From: Phaeosaccion multiseriatum
Lineage: Eukaryota; Protista; Ochrophyta, other classes
DNA: 64,000 nucleotides
Direction: 5' to 3'
Assembly (NCBI GenBank): GCA_965112735.1
Contig: OZ218953.1
Coordinates: forward strand, 2,542,001-2,606,000
Shown here: positions 42,676 through 50,306 of the stretch, one piece after another
Numbering within the stretch: position 1 is the stretch's first letter
Layout: every line of letters starts with the position of its first letter
Program-made: the position numbers and the translations under genes
The notes under the pieces: model-generated
Database searches by the model: none
Told to the model about the DNA's origin: nothing
The model's input: only the letters and a program-made list of their open reading frames with translations

Positions 42676-44079
42676 GCGGCGGCGGCGGTGGTGGCGGCAG
42701 CAACACCCACAAGAGACAGATGGAAGGGGCGGAGTCAGGTATAAGAGACAGAGAGAGCCCAGGATCCTTCGAATCCGTGGCAGCGAGGGGGCAGGGACGC
42801 ATGCATGTCCGCCCATGGCTTCCTAAGCGGGGAGAGAAGCGGCGCACGTATGTGCTGCACAGTACAGAGGAGCGAAGGCAGCACCACTTCGCGGGTGTGG
42901 CCAATGGCCTGAGTTTCCTTTTCCGCAGCCATCGCTCGAGGCCCTGCCTGTACAGTACACCTGACAGCATGCCTGCCCCGCCTCACAGAGCTCACACACG
43001 CCCGCACCCGGCAACTGTCTCACGTACCACCCCCTCATTTGTTTCTCTCTCATGCACACACATACACATACACACACTCTCTCTCTGCGTTCGTGTGTGT
43101 GTGTCTCTCTGTCAGTCACTCACTCACTCACTCACGCACCTCTCCGACGCAGAACATCTCGCTGCAGTCCCCGTGGTAGCCTCCCACGAAGCACGTCACA
43201 TCAACATTGATCACGTCCCCCTCCTTGAGCACAGATGAGTCGGGAATGCCGTGACAAATGACCTCGTTCACGGATGTGCAGCATGACTTGGGAAAGCCGC
43301 AGTAGTTCAGAGGGGAGGGGTAGCCCCCCCTCTTCAGAGTCTCCTCGTGCACGATTCGGTCGATTTCGTCCGTCGTCACCCCCGGCGCTACCGCTCGGCC
43401 GGCAATGTCCAGCACCTCTCGAGCCACACGGCCTGCTATCCGCATGGCGGCGATATCCTGGGCATTGGGGAGGGGGTGGGGGTGAGGGGGTGTTGAGGGT
43501 ACGAGGGACGAGGAAAGCCAAGGAGAGATGAGAGCATGGAAGAGAAGAGCAGAGCCAGCCATGGTGAGAACAGGACATGAGAGGAAAGAGGAATTGGAAC
43601 TGAGAGGACACATGAAAAACCCGGCCCTCCTCCTCCTCCCTCACTACTCTTTCCTTCACTCCTTCCCTTACCTCCGCGTTCTTCTCCTCAATCATCCAGG
43701 GAAAGCGCTGACGGTTGGGTCCGGGCTTTCCAGTGACCGCGTAGTCTGGCTTCATGATTTCGTCCGGCACTACACGCCTCGGGGAGAGCTTTCCAGGCAC
43801 CACCTTGCCCGAGTAGCTGAAAGTCTTTGCGCTCTTCACAGTCTTCTTCTTCTTCTTCTTTCCAGCCGAGGTACCGAAACCCCCGCCCATCATCTTCATC
43901 TTCTCCCCTACGCTCCCCACGCCCCTCCCCCTCCCATTCGTTGCTGCTCCTGCCGCGGGTGGCGGTGATGGGTGTGATGACCTTCCATTCCCCACTACGG
44001 TCGAGCTAGGAACTACGAAGGCAGCTACTGTGTGAGAAAGCAACAGCACCGTTGCTGTCACTCCTGCTGCTGTCCTCAT
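41383..44079 (-). CDS. MAP1: Plastid methionine aminopeptidase type 1; 6 exons
   Basis: Presequence ..HTVAA-F; PDYAVTG; [13 protein letters not shown]; [28 protein letters not shown]; [11 protein letters not shown]; FCGHGIG..FHTSP; FTIEPMI; [11 protein letters not shown]. Exons 44079-43672, ~43457-43139, ~42628-42538, ~42368-42222, ~41950-41792, ~41573-41383. Confidence 0.95.
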
Positions 44080-44226
44080 CCTTGCCTTCTCCCACGTTCG
44101 CACACTGTCTCCTCTTGTCAAGCCGTGCAAACAAGAATGAAAATGTCCACCCCGGGAAAGTGCAGCAGTTGGTGCATCGAGCAGTTGGGCGAAGGATCAC
44201 AAAGAAAACAAACAAACACCTCCATC

Positions 44227-46442
44227 ATGCCTTCGGCTGCCAGCTCTGCAGCGGAGGGAGGAAAGCTACATGAGCTGATATCCAACCTGGTCGACACCCG
44301 CCTGAAGCAGTGCGAACCGCGGCAGCTGAGGGTCGACACGAGGAGGCCGGCAACTGCATCGGGTGTAGGACGAGTGCCAGCAGCAGCGACGAGAGGGATG
44401 ACTGGTAGCAGTAGCGCTACGACGCTTCGTTCTGGGCAGCAGCGAAAAGACCTGAGCAAGTCAGGCCGGCAGCGTTCTTACCAGCAAATGCAGCAAGAAC
44501 ATGGGGCCAAGCGCAGACAGCAGGGAGCTAGGACTACTGCGGCCGAGGGCCCAGTGTCCAGCGGTGCTGAGGACGCGTTTCCGCTCAGGACGGAGGAAGA
44601 GGCGGACTGGCCTGGTGCTCACTGTCCTCCTTTCCCCTCGAACGTGGAACAACTAGGCCTGCAAGGCCAAGTTCTGTATCTAAAGGTCAAGGCGGACTCG
44701 TGTCTTCACACCGCGGAGATGGCACGGATGGGTATCAACGTAGGAGCAGGGCGATCTGCTTGGAATCGGAGTATAGAGGATGTACATGAGGAGGAGGGTG
44801 GGGCGGTAGGGGCAAGAAGAGATGGAGGCGCGAATCAAGGGCGGCGCTTCATAAGAAAAGGCTGGGAAGAGCAAGTAGGAAAGGGCGAGGGCAAAGGTAC
44901 TTCGAGAGAGCTGCACAGCCCGGGAGCACGTGGAATCACGTTTGAGGGATTAAGTGGAGGAGGAAGGGTAAGAGGAGGAGGAGGAGGAGGAGGAGGAGGA
45001 GGAGGAGGAGGAGGAGGAGGAAAGGTGGATGCCCACTTGGCGTCTCCAAGCTCCTCGCATCCTCCATCAGCAGCACCCCCCTCGCCAGCCGCGCCCGTGA
45101 AGGAGGAGTCCTGCTTTGAGCAGTACTTGAGTCTTGTCGAAAGCGCACTCCTGACATATGACCAGGCTTGGGGTATGGCAGCGGACCCCAATCAGGGCCT
45201 GCCCACTCACCACTCCCTCCGCTTGGAGCTGGGCCTCAGCGTGACTCGCGTGCTGCTCGAGCATGCGCGAAGCCCCGTAGATGCGTGGAATGCGGGCTAT
45301 GGCGTGTACACGCAGGCGGCTGCGCACGTGGACCAGTTGGATGAGCTAGGTATGTTGGTGCTCCAGCGGTTAAGGGATTTACTTGGCAGTGTCGAAGAGT
45401 ACGTGAGGCGTGAGGCGGCGAGCGAAGGACAAGAGCCGAGTGAGTCCCATGGGTATGCTCGTAAAGGAGGAACAGCGTCAGCAGTTGGTGATACAGCACC
45501 TCCGAAGGGTGAGCAAGGTGTTCCGACAGGGAGTTGCGGGGCTTCAACGGGAGCTCCCGCAAAGGGGGGTGCGCTGTTACCCTTGGATGGTACATTGAGG
45601 CGTGGAGAGGAAGAGAAGAAGAACAAAAAGCAGCAGGAGGAGGTGGAGGAGGAGGAGGAGCAAAGGAGGCTTCGCTTCAGTGTTGTGATGAGCAAGATGA
45701 AGGCGACTTTCTCGAGCTCCTCTCTCGGCCTCAAACGGGCAGTGGGCCAAGAGCATGGGCAGGCGCAGGTGAGCGGATCGATCCATTCTGCGAGGTCGGA
45801 GGGAGGGACTGGTGGTGCAATTGACTGTTGAACAGAAGTGCTCTGCAGTCATGCAAAGACTTCCGGACTTGTCATGGAAAAGCCGCCGCAATTAATGTAG
45901 TGTTGCGAGAACGGAGGAGGGCAGATGATGGATGACGAAGAGAGAGAGAGAGAGAGAGAAGAGAGAGCTGACCGAGAGAGAAAGAGACAGGGGGTGGACT
46001 AGAACTGACTGACAGGGAGGTCTGACCGAGGGAGACAGATAGAAAGAGGGCTCACCGTGTAGCACTGCCATGTGTGGGCTGTACTGTTGTATTCTCCCCC
46101 CCCCCCCCCTCCCTCTTGCAGAGGCCGGCTCGCTCCTCGTCCAACACGCCTGTCGTGAGTGGGGCGGCGGCGGAGACGCAGCGCGTGAGGCAGCTCTTCA
46201 GGGTGCCGGTAAGTATGTATGTTATTCGGAAGTGCGTGGCCCTCCTCCTCCTCCTCCTCCTCCTCCTCCTCCTCCTCCTCCTCCTCCTCCTCCTCCTCCT
46301 CCTCCTCCTCCTCCTCCTCCTCCTCCTCCTCCTCCTCCTCCTCCTCCTCCTCCTCCTCCTCCTCCTCCTCCTCCTCCTCCTCCTCCTCCTCCTCCTCCTC
46401 CTCTTCCTTCTCCTCCTCCTCCTCCTTCTCCTCCTCCTCCTT

Positions 46443-46473
<31 letters not shown>

Positions 46474-46688
46474 TCCTCCTCCTCCTCCTTCCCCCTCCTC
46501 CTCGTCCTCCTCCTCCTCCTCCTCCTCCTCCTCCTCCTCCTCCTCCTCCTCCTCCTCCTCCTCCTCCTCCTCCTCCTCCCCCTTTGAAGCCACTTCTATG
46601 GACCGATGTCGCAAGTCCCCCCTCTGCGCCCCGCTTGCGGACCCACTTCACTCCACCCGCCCCCCCCTACGGCCCCGATACTGTATCC

Positions 46689-46743
<55 letters not shown>

Positions 46744-47319
46744 TGCCTCCCCCGGCCTCGGTCACCCTCGCTCCCCCCCCACCTTCGTCCTCCCCTCCTC
46801 CAGCCGGTGCCCTTGTCAGAGGTGTCTCCCTCCCACACGGAGGTCCTTGCCGCTCTGAGAGACATGTTCGCCTCCTACTCCGTGGGCAATGTCGTTGTCC
46901 TCGCACAGACGGACGGCACGCACGCTAAGATGCAGGTGCGTGCGTGAGTGCGTGGGTGAGCGAGCCCCATCTCCCTGGCTCACATGGCCACAAGTAGGAG
47001 TCCATCCAGGGCGGGTGTCCTCACTCGTGTATACTCATTCAACGAATCTCTTCGTCTGTACGCACTGTGCCCGCGCTCTCTCTCTCTGTCTCTCGGTCTC
47101 TCTCTCTCTCTTACTCTCTCGCTCCCTCTGTACTTTCTTTCTCTCCGTTTCTCTCCCTCTCTCTCTTTGTGCGTGTATGTGTGTGTGCGCAGGGCAAGTC
47201 CGTCGCGCTGAGCGAGGTGCTGCTGCAAGGCCCGTTCATGAGCTGGAGAGGGTTCGAGGCCATGGCAGGCGACTTCAACCTGGCACCAGTCGTGCCGCCA
47301 TCGGTGGGGGGGGGCTCAC

Positions 47320-47352
<33 letters not shown>

Positions 47353-48221
47353 TGGTGATGCAGCAGCAGAGCCAAGGAGACTTCCTCCTGAGCGCGCTGC
47401 AGCTCCGCGTTGTGTTTCTCGCGTCTGCTATGCACGAGTCCCGGGTACGTGTGTGTGTGTGATGGGGGGTGTGACTGAAGGGGGGGGTGGGGAGGGGAGA
47501 TGACGAGTGGAGAGGTTTGGAGGAGGCATGTTCGTAGGATGGGATGATAAGCCCGTCCCTCCATGACGCTCACAACGGGACGCTAGCCATTGGCGTCTGA
47601 AGCAGTTCAGTAGCTCGCTTCCATTGGATTAGCCGGCCTCTCCACCCCTCTGCCCCTCCCTCCGTTGATCTAATCTTGGCGCATCTGCTCCGTTCGCTTG
47701 TGATGAAATTGGGCCTCTGCACGATAAACAGGTGGTGTCCATGTACGAGAGCGATGGAGGCACCGCCACAGGTTCGGGGAAGGGAGAGGAAGAAGAAGGG
47801 GCAGCAGGAGTAGCAGCAGCAGCAGCAGCAGCAGCAGGAGGAGGAGGAGGAGGAGAAAGCGGGGGAGTGTCTGCGGGAAAGGGGATAGTTGAACCCGTTG
47901 TGACGCGACAGCAGACCATGAACCCGTGGGAGGACGCCACGCAGCGCTTCGGCCGCGAAGAAGATGACTTTTGGAGCACGGTGGCGGATCAAGTGGGAGG
48001 GGGCGCAGCACCAGGAGGAGAAGGAGCCTCGAAGGGGTGGGGAGGAGAAGCAGCAGGAGGGGCTGTGAAGCAAGCCCCCCGCCGGAACAGTAGGGACAAG
48101 CAGCAGCAGCAGCAGCAGCAGGGGTGGCCGCCGTCTTCGGTGGGCTTGAACTTCGCTCAGGTGGGGCTTCCGGACGTGGGGGGGGGGGCTGAGTGAGTAG
48201 GGAGTATTGAGTATTGAGTCT

Positions 48222-48262
<41 letters not shown>

Positions 48263-48613
48263 CCTCCTCGACTTCCTCTCTGCTTCGTAACTCCCTCCTG
48301 ACCATGTTCCTCTTGTTCTCTCCTCCCCCCTCCCCCCTTTGTTGTGCAGTTCGTGGACGCCATTGGTCGCTGCGGCTTAGTCGGCTTTGGCGCAGGGCAC
48401 GTGCAAGCGGTCTTCAACACCCCCCTTGAGCGGGTGCAAGCGGCGTTCCTGACGCAGATGGGCCTGCTGAATGAACGCACTTGGAGGGCGAGGGTGAGGA
48501 GCCACATCCATGCAGCCGAGTCCGTCCAAGCCCAGCAGGAGAAGCAGCAGCACTTGATGATACAGCACCAGCAGAACACGACAAGGCGGAGATCGTCTAC
48601 GGGTGGAGCGTGA
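44227..48613 (+). CDS. Divergent 14-3-3-like domain fused to a C-terminal EF-hand-like helical region; ~6 exons
   Basis: GQVLYLKVKADSCLHTAE (cf. KVFYLKMKGDYYRYLAE); TYDQAWGMA..LPTHHSLRLELGLSVTRVLLEHARSPVDAWNAG..AAAHVDQLD..GMLVLQRLRDLL (cf. 14-3-3 helices 6-9). Exons 44227-~45768, ~46121-46208, 46804-46935, 47193-~47444, ~47732-48160, 48350-48613. Confidence 0.75.
46241..46578. repeat. ~340-bp interrupted (CCT)n tract in an intron, followed by (GCCT)n at ~46692-46750
   Basis: Direct reading of sequence. Confidence 0.95.
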
Positions 48614-49066
48614 GCGTGAGGAGCCGAATATCCGAGCAAGCCCGAATAGAAGGTTGTTATTATATTTATTACACCCTTAAGTGCCATCTATGGTTGTCTA
48701 AAAGTAACGCTTTGTCTCCCACCGCCCCGGGGAACTTAGCCCCCGATCGACCCCGAGGTCGTAATCCCTCCGGGGAAAAGCTGATACCAGCCAGGACCCT
48801 GTGTCGAATCGATCGCTCGTGTCGGGCCCGCTGGAGCGCCACGGCCAATCGCTTCCGAATGACGCAAACAGCTCTCGCATAAGCCCTTATGTCCAGATGT
48901 TCGTGCCCCCCAGCCATGTGGGAGAGAGTCGAAAAGGTGCCAAGTGTGAAATATGTCAAATGACAAATGGACGAATTTCCAACGTGTGTACGATGTTTCC
49001 CTCCTCCACATCTCCACGTCTTCTATCCGACACATATTTAAAAGGAATAGAGAAGACTTATAATCC

Positions 49067-50306
49067 ATGCTTTCACCTACTGTTGTGGTCGTCCTCCTCC
49101 TCCCTGCTGCTCAAGGCTGGATCGCACATCAGAAGCCTGCTCTCAAAACATGGAACACCTTTGCCATGGACAGACGGGGAAGCACTCCATCAGTGACGGC
49201 GCTCGGAATCAAGCCATCTAGAGTGGAGAATGCATTGGGAAGGAGAGGAACGCACGGGTTGGGGGCGGAACGGATGGTGCGGAGGAGGCAGCGTACGGAG
49301 TTGCGGGTATACCCTGAGGATAGAAATGACGACTTCAGCTCAGAATTGGAGGACATTAGGGCAGAAGTGGAGCGCGGGTGAGTGCAGACGAGGCCTTTTT
49401 GTTCTCTCCATTGAGGCATGCGATGCGCCCTCCTAAAGAATCTTGTTGCAGCGCCATCTCTCCCCGACCAGTGGCTGCAGACCCTTCGCGGTTGTCTCCC
49501 TCACTATTGGCGCGAGTACCGTCGTGGCCCTCCACTGAGAAATCTGTCCCCTGGCTTGCTCCTCCCTCCCCCCCCCCCCCACCACCACCACCACCACGGC
49601 AGACTGGAGTCCATGAGGCGCAACCCCTACGTTCTGGTCGGTCTCGCTGTGGCAGCAGGGCTGGCTGCCGCGAACTTGACCCTGCTGGCCGTGCCCATTC
49701 TGTCCTTCGCCCTCCTCTCCCTCACGATGGTACTCTCCCAGACGCTCTTCTTCCTCCTGGCGGCGGTCGTGGTGTCCGGCTTCGCGCTCTTGGCAGTGGC
49801 AGGGGTGGCAGGCCTGGCCCTTCCGCTGGTGCTGCCTGGCGCGCTGCTCGCAGTAGGGCTGGGGGCCTTGGCGCAGCGACAGTGGAAGGCAAGCCTCGCT
49901 CAAGGTGCGACTCACTCTCTCTCTCTCTTTGTGTGTGTGTATGTGTGTGTGTGTATGTATGCTTGTGTGTGCTTGTGTGTATGGCCATCAGAACAGCAGA
50001 CGAGCAGCAGGAGCAGCAGAGGTCGAGAGGGGGGGCGGGACAGTGACAATGGAGCCCACGCAGTCTAGCCCGCTTCCAAATACTGAGGTCACCGCCCTCC
50101 CCTTCCTGCGTCCCTCCCTCCCTCCCCTCTCCCCGACAGACGTAGAGGGCAGTGCTTCAGGCGCGGCTGAAGTTATTGACGTTGACGTGATTGAGCGGGA
50201 GGCCACCGTCAAGGAAACAGAACCCATTCGGGGGTTCGACGACTTGGAGAACTTCGACGAGCGCCTCAAGGAACAAATCAGGGCAGAGGAGGAGAAGGAG
50301 AGGTGA
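49067..50306 (+). CDS. Plastid-targeted membrane protein of unknown function; 3 exons
   Basis: Presequence MLSPTVVVVLLLPAAQG-W; exons 49067-49377, 49603-49903 (long hydrophobic stretch, 2-3 TM), 50140-50306 (EVIDVDV..LENFDERL); phases consistent. Confidence 0.75.

Follow-up and report, generated by a model that had tools for sequence, protein, structure and literature searches.

The gene described here lies at positions 44227-48613 on the forward strand of a 64,000-nucleotide stretch from Phaeosaccion multiseriatum (assembly GCA_965112735.1, contig OZ218953.1, positions 2,542,001 to 2,606,000), which we refer to as the window. The stretch is eukaryotic, and searches of the alga's own genome covered an assembly of 67 Mb in 22 pieces. 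The gene model was read from the DNA together with translations of candidate exons. It has six exons that total 901 residues, and its stop codon is at 48611-48613. We consider it likely that this is a single six-exon gene in which a region derived from 14-3-3 proteins (PF00244), corresponding to helices 5-9, is followed by a helical linker and a conserved tail, and that its product would act as a phosphate-independent adaptor or scaffold.

The 14-3-3 proteins are a textbook example of extreme conservation; with about 250 residues, they stand alone, form dimers and recognise phosphoserine. Each subunit is a nine-helix cup, and the dimer is formed by packing helices 1-2 of one subunit against helices 3-4 of its partner. 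The phosphate is bound by residues K49, R56, R127 and Y128 (14-3-3 zeta numbering is used throughout) and the backbone of the bound peptide is clamped by N173 and N224.

The frame that begins with the ATG at 44227 is uninterrupted for 534 codons, and the proposed donor of exon 1 (CAG/GTGAGC) is at 45769. All five introns of the model are GT-AG introns in phase 0. Exon 1 aligns with 14 relatives, which are described below. They include three brown-algal proteins, from Ectocarpus sp. 6 (P0014, CAM9663336.1, 714 residues), Scytosiphon promiscuus (P0012, CAM9984921.1, partial) and Nemacystus decipiens (P0002, g4270.t1), with which the remaining exons were compared. Exon 2 is the least certain exon; it is loosely similar to the linker of the relatives, and the frame survives its skipping. 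Exon 3 matches by eye a segment ending ...ALKQ.F..Y in P0002 and P0012, and MAFFT places this exon differently. Searches with tblastn using the tails of P0014 and P0012 match exon 4 at 47190-47306 (E 5e-5 and 1e-3) and 47385-47441; the match of the family profile to this exon in the alga's own genome arises by construction, the exon being a row of the alignment. The start and end of exon 5 match the sequence that flanks the relatives' own inserts, and exon 6 is matched by tblastn with E values of 2e-8 (P0002) and 2e-7 (P0014). Sequence from the relatives reads across the junctions 2/3, 3/4, 4/5 and 5/6, and the 1/2 junction is loosely matched. The peptide strings quoted in the initial annotation of this DNA all occur in the frames and at the positions given for them, and the tblastn matches bear out its view that the downstream exons are real and conserved. 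It had also treated both halves as one gene, a reading that appears supported because P0014, P0012 and P0002 each hold the two halves in one protein and because on a fourth brown-algal contig (L010) the halves are adjacent on one strand. Paralogues of the core and of the tail were sought in the alga's own genome, and the gene itself was the sole match, so that it is single copy; a 19.9-bit match on C14 looks unrelated.

Table 1. Exons and protein segments of the gene, with window positions, and two weak PF00244 matches elsewhere in the genome, with genome positions.
Feature	Position	Strand	Description
Exon 1	44227..45768	+	514 aa; entire 14-3-3-derived part, two long inserts and charged helical linker
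Exon 2	46122..46208	+	29 aa; acceptor TTGCAG/, donor /GTAAGT, phase 0 on both sides
Exon 3	46804..46935	+	44 aa; end of linker and first helix of C-terminal domain
Exon 4	47193..47444	+	84 aa; first helix-loop-helix-like unit of tail, with poly-Gln insert
Exon 5	47732..48160	+	143 aa; mainly Ala/Gly-rich insert, ending with first residues of second unit
Exon 6	48350..48613	+	87 aa and stop; second helix-loop-helix-like unit, most conserved part of tail
N-terminal amphipathic helix (aa 13-28)	44263..44310	+	family-conserved block ending in an R-L pair (alignment A1)
Insert 1 (aa 29-140, 112 aa)	44311..44646	+	low-complexity, mostly disordered in model
Helix 5 motif (aa 146-167)	44662..44727	+	K120, D124 and E131 equivalents kept; R127 replaced by L, Y128 by H
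Insert 2 (aa 168-293, 126 aa)	44728..45105	+	Gly/Arg/Glu-rich with a Gly18 run; pLDDT mostly < 50
Helices 6-9 (aa 294-400)	45106..45426	+	best conserved part; pLDDT 78-93
Linker (aa 401-514)	45427..45768	+	disordered stretch, then long charged helix
Weak PF00244 match on C5 (loci L007, L008)	G000:C5:1453392-1453553	+	one of two weak matches
Weak PF00244 match on C5 (loci L007, L008)	G000:C5:1401674-1401835	-	one of two weak matches

All searches and folds were made exon by exon. PF00244 matches residues 302-373 of exon 1 to model positions 134-202 (E 0.0034, 17.4 bits), and in a protein-language-model search with residues 288-400, 28 of the 30 matches listed are 14-3-3 clusters (score 0.92). 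Three islands of the protein had been proposed to match 14-3-3, and each was compared by Smith-Waterman alignment with the alga's own canonical 14-3-3 (G000:C7:3105966-3107011) and with 2000 shuffles. Two of them stand. The island for helices 6-9 (residues 294-400) has z = 10.2 and its score was reached by none of the shuffles; that for helix 5 (residues 146-167) has z = 4.2 and its score was reached by four. The island proposed as helix 3 (residues 18-26) is not significant (z = 0.8, 438 of 2000 shuffles), and its best local alignment differs from the proposed one.

The 14 relatives emerged, with E values from 5e-8 to 5e-4, when residues 288-400 were searched exhaustively against 1.84 billion representatives. 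Most of them match PF00244 weakly themselves, jointly covering model positions 68-202; P0001 reaches 34.2 bits, above the gathering cut-off of 33.2 bits, and P0013 reaches 28. In the alignment of the window protein with these relatives (A1, 15 sequences), all of them intact and drawn from several organisms, 13 columns are invariant and 19 nearly so. Compared with the sequences of the PDB, the A1 profile matches 14-3-3 chains in all 60 of the rows listed, in two stretches, with E values from 3e-10 to 1e-6. Aligned by hhalign to the second exon of the own canonical 14-3-3, it gives a probability of 94.5% over 70 columns (E 7.5e-8), and with the first exon the helix-5 motif alone aligns (12.8%). 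Together with the structural comparisons below, these results establish the descent of helices 5-9 from 14-3-3, in agreement with the initial annotation.

The AlphaFold model of exon 1 has a mean pLDDT of 57, rising to 78-93 over residues 330-400. The best 50 rows of a Foldseek search with this model are all 14-3-3 proteins, at E values of about 0.01, and VIA-align gives a Z of about 10 against 14-3-3. Word-based protein searches with the whole of exon 1, with residues 288-400 and with A1 gave no matches; as two of them were swamped by low-complexity words, these negatives are uninformative. A search of the PDB with the whole of exon 1 gave scFv-chain Gly-linker artefacts only, and scanning metagenomes with P0001 or with the alignment of the core gave no matches.

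The N-terminal helix is predicted by AlphaFold to span residues 4-28, and VIA aligns model residues from 22 onwards to 14-3-3 residues from 46 onwards. Neither the shuffle test nor hhalign against the own canonical 14-3-3 gives sequence-level support for its identity with helix 3, which had been tentatively proposed. Its position and a few structural alignments would put it in the place of helix 3. Between this helix and helix 5 the family is variable, with 12-60 residues in the relatives compared with 112 in the window protein, and helix 4 cannot be recognised by sequence in this region. Here the window protein carries the first of two long low-complexity inserts that split the 14-3-3-derived half, as described initially. 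In insert 1 the pLDDT is below 50 over residues 29-73 and 102-134, and AlphaFold places one confident polar helix at residues 75-101 (pLDDT 73-87). Insert 2 is specific to this lineage, being absent from all 14 relatives, in which helix 5 leads directly to helix 6; the insert of the brown-algal relatives lies elsewhere, between helices 6 and 7. Retained introns were considered as an origin of the inserts and rejected, as no in-frame GT..AG candidate with a pyrimidine-rich acceptor was found and the composition is exon-like and purine-rich. In the linker AlphaFold predicts a helix at residues 456-507 with a pLDDT of about 90, which can be loosely aligned to the helical linker conserved among the relatives.

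The conservation of key 14-3-3 residues was compared in the 15 members of the family. The equivalents of the structural residues K120, D124, H164 and R222 are kept in all 15, and those of E131 and D223 in every member but P0001. The position of R127 is Leu or Val in 15 of 15, and that of Y128 is His in 14 and Gly in P0001. At N173 the window protein has Ser and its relatives have Arg, Lys or His; at N224 it has Leu and they have His or Gln; and W228 is replaced by Val or Ile. With R127, Y128, N173 and N224 replaced, part of the phosphate pocket and both asparagine clamps are therefore gone. The replacements of R127 by Leu and Y128 by His had been noted before and are based on a firm motif alignment. 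Ser and Leu had likewise been assigned to K49 and R56. These two assignments depend on the helix-3 register, to which position and structure contribute and sequence does not, and they are not upheld. The register at these residues is ambiguous, since extrapolation of the hidden Markov model alignment shifts it by three residues, and neither register gives Lys and Arg at K49 and R56 in the window protein.

Helices 1-2, which form one side of the canonical dimer interface, are absent from the window protein, as the initial annotation had noted, and from nine relatives, namely those represented in the alignment by a helix-3-like N-terminus. These nine relatives begin 4 to 15 residues before the N-terminal helix. 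Helices 1-2 are truly absent, because the relatives start so close to this helix and because about 100 bases separate the gene from its upstream neighbour, which is on the opposite strand. A complete nine-helix cup was not found; helices 5-9 alone align by sequence, with one N-terminal helix at the place of helix 3.

The C-terminal tail consists of two similar units. In each, a hydrophobic helix leads into a turn that is acidic or contains Cys, and a variable insert then precedes a second helix. The last unit contains 16 invariant columns (alignment A5). The tail had been likened to degenerate EF-hand or p25alpha (PF05517) repeats, an identity that finds no support in the searches made here. 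No Pfam family, and among them no EF-hand family, matches the tail exons of the gene or the tails of P0012, P0014 and P0002 at E values up to 10, and no PROSITE-type EF-hand loop or DxDxDG motif is present in any exon or in the three relatives. The Rossmann-like GxGxGxxGR motif is absent from all window exons and from P0012 and P0002, and the single match in P0014 falls within a Gly-rich insert. According to PMC3498115, this motif marks a complete or partial p25alpha domain. The short and truncated TPPP types also lack it, so its absence alone does not exclude them. A comparison of the tail with the alga's own p25alpha by hhalign gave probabilities of 0.35-0.65%, and a PF05517 scan of the own genome found loci on C9 and C15 (four other exons) and not this gene. 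The tail profiles A3 and A5 gave non-significant single matches in the PDB, to the RuBisCO small chain (E 0.63) and to FAP216 (E 0.59). The AlphaFold model of the tail is unusable (mean pLDDT 40.5). The tail is thus a conserved helical domain that matches no described family.

A canonical p25alpha (TPPP-like) protein of the short type, with 97 residues, is encoded by a single open frame of this genome at G000:C9:3596666-3596959 (L012:3167-3460, minus strand). There are more p25alpha-like exons close to it on C9, and C15 has one within a frame of 770 codons.

The family is small, and sequence searches found it in brown algae (Ectocarpus, Scytosiphon, Nemacystus and further assemblies), this stramenopile alga and one metagenomic alga. 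The brown-algal members are annotated as unnamed protein products only. They share the architecture of the window protein from end to end, with an N-terminal helix, the core of helices 5-9, a helical linker and a two-unit tail, and the core is 37-44% identical. They differ from it in the long insert between helices 6 and 7, in place of the loops that are expanded in the window protein, and in the residues at N173 and N224 given above, and overall identity is 22-28%. P0001 is a compact stand-alone protein of 153 residues with no inserts (L009:7992-8462, JGI metagenome 3300068088, contig Ga0617939_0001049). It is the only member of the family above the PF00244 cut-off and there is no tail within 8 kb; thus either a stand-alone form exists or the lineage of P0001 has lost the tail. 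Its contig is of eukaryotic algal origin and also carries MinE, ERO1 and kinesin genes.

Compared with canonical 14-3-3 proteins (human zeta and the alga's own copy), the window protein aligns over helices 5-9 with significant profile scores. It shares the helix-5 motif around K120, D124 and E131, the start of helix 7 around H164 and R167, and R222-D223 in helix 9. Unlike them, it has neither helices 1-2 nor a helix 4 that can be recognised by sequence, it has replaced R127, Y128, N173, N224 and W228, it carries loop inserts of more than 100 residues and it scores below the Pfam cut-off. Whereas canonical 14-3-3 proteins are small and stand alone, the window protein has about 900 residues and a further conserved domain. 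We would therefore class it as derived from 14-3-3, and not as a 14-3-3 protein. The stramenopile TPPP-like multidomain proteins with short or truncated p25alpha domains (Orosz 2012, PMC3498115) resemble it in having a helical unit of similar hydrophobic pattern within a larger protein of a flagellated stramenopile, but the tail of the window protein lacks a PF05517 match at the thresholds tried and lacks the Rossmann-like motif. In the passages of the same article that were consulted, 14-3-3 is not among the tabulated partners of stramenopile p25alpha multidomain proteins, and we found no description in the literature of a combination of 14-3-3 with p25alpha or of such a fusion.

We suggest that the remnant of the 14-3-3 cup may serve as a groove in which a peptide or protein docks independently of phosphate. 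The canonical dimer is probably not formed, and the groove would be tethered to a second interaction module in the tail, so that the protein could serve as an adaptor or scaffold. A monomeric, phospho-independent scaffold, as put forward in the initial annotation, can thus reasonably be inferred from the sequence. Several observations weigh against parts of this interpretation. The window protein alone lies below the PF00244 gathering cut-off (17.4 compared with 33.2 bits). The structural scores are modest, with a mean pLDDT of 57, and a Z of about 10 is attainable by a helical arrangement alone. The conserved equivalents of K120 and R222, together with the Arg or His of the brown-algal members at N173 and N224, could bind an acidic ligand. 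Support for exon 2 is weak. Among reads over 46660-49300, two metatranscriptomes gave spurious low-complexity 31-mers alone, and the other runs (X3 and X4) are DNA.

One alternative is a protein that still reads phosphoproteins, with phosphate bound through other residues (the conserved Lys and Arg, and His in place of Tyr128 and Asn224) and subunits paired by a different interface. The invariance of the K120 and R222 equivalents, the His at Y128 in 14 of 15 members and the basic or polar residues of the brown-algal members at N173 (Arg, Lys or His) and N224 (His or Gln) are consistent with this. The position of R127 is hydrophobic in every member, however, and no register of the N-terminal helix gives Lys and Arg at both K49 and R56 in the window protein. 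In this alga N173 is Ser and N224 is Leu, so the extra basic residues are not family-wide, and we regard a retained phosphoprotein reader as quite unlikely. A different proposal concerns the tail, which might be a degenerate tubulin-binding module of the p25alpha or EF-hand type that links a client to the flagellar microtubules of motile cells. By eye its helix pattern resembles the first half of p25alpha, and in the hhalign comparison the conserved exon-6 motif falls on the own p25alpha's second helix. Five of the 30 language-model matches listed are clusters with PF05517 in 17% of their members, and the lone PDB match of one tail profile is to FAP216 of the Chlamydomonas central apparatus. 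PMC3498115 and PMC10057920 report that the presence of p25alpha domains follows that of flagella, and that stramenopiles have multidomain proteins containing such domains in a short form. Against these likenesses, none of the scores is significant, the hhalign probability and the FAP216 match included, PF05517 finds four other exons in the genome and not this gene, no Pfam family is matched by the tail in the gene's own exons or in the three full-length relatives, the Rossmann-like motif and the EF-hand loop are lacking and the AlphaFold model of the tail is at a pLDDT of 40. A flagellar or microtubule adaptor thus seems rather unlikely. To a still more specific form of the idea we give little credence, namely an old 14-3-3 offshoot, spread through brown algae and their relatives, that acts as a single-chain reader. 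Its groove would be re-lined (Leu, His, and either Arg or Ser) to take a ligand that is not phosphorylated, and would be permanently tethered to a tubulin-binding p25alpha-like module. If true, the protein would be a natural 14-3-3-derived adaptor at flagellar or cytoplasmic microtubules.

The remaining alternatives concern the gene itself. A 14-3-3-like gene could stop at 45829-45831, and the tail could be encoded by a separate, unrelated gene downstream. The frame of exon 1 does continue to this stop, 63 bases beyond the proposed donor, no RNA evidence joins the halves and P0001 lacks the tail. But the three annotated brown-algal proteins and the fourth contig join or adjoin the halves, a conserved linker between the halves spans exons 1-3, every junction is in phase, and a tail gene standing alone would have no evident start codon followed by a homologous N-terminus. 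Two genes are, on this evidence, very unlikely. It is hardly credible that the likeness to 14-3-3 arose by chance in a low-complexity open frame, or that the gene is a decaying 14-3-3 pseudogene. Half of exon 1 is indeed of low complexity and the first two word-based searches gave no matches, but such an origin is contradicted by the 14 relatives, by the conserved columns of A1 in 15 intact proteins, by the PDB profile matches (E 3e-10 at best), by the hhalign probability of 94.5% and by the intact six-exon frame.

On the preferred reading of one 14-3-3-derived adaptor gene, the family has kept the rear half of the cup over a long evolutionary time, has lost the dimer interface together with some of the phosphate pocket, and is fused to another conserved domain. 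It would show what else the 14-3-3 fold can do, and would be a natural system in which to study how a groove binds independently of phosphate and how a 14-3-3 works as a monomer. Three "unnamed protein products" of brown-algal genomes also gain a first structural anchor from it. These points will carry limited practical weight until the protein has a known ligand, location or phenotype.

Elsewhere in the alga's genome, two equal PF00244 matches of 15.7 bits to model positions 144-197 lie on C5 (Table 1), about 50 kb apart on opposite strands. This pair is probably a duplicated second divergent 14-3-3-like gene. The open frame on C5 is not close to the family of the window protein (hhalign with A1, 0.45% over 18 columns).

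Upstream of the gene, the minus strand at 43128-44130 carries exons that by eye resemble, in translation, a type-1 methionine aminopeptidase. The two genes are arranged head to head with about 100 bases between their frames, and a shared bidirectional promoter is therefore likely. Simple repeats occupy 46237-46575 and 46683-46743 in intron 2, namely a microsatellite of (CCT)n, about 330 bp in length, and a tract of (CTGC)n. Owing to them, both strands show long open frames for poly-Pro, poly-Leu and poly-Ser that are spurious. The stop codon is directly followed, at 48660-48922, by a dispersed repeat of about 265 bp. There are at least 265 candidate copies of it in the genome, of which 40 were scored and are mostly 82-87% identical. 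Its depth in DNA contigs is up to several hundred times that of its flanks, and it looks SINE- or MITE-like.

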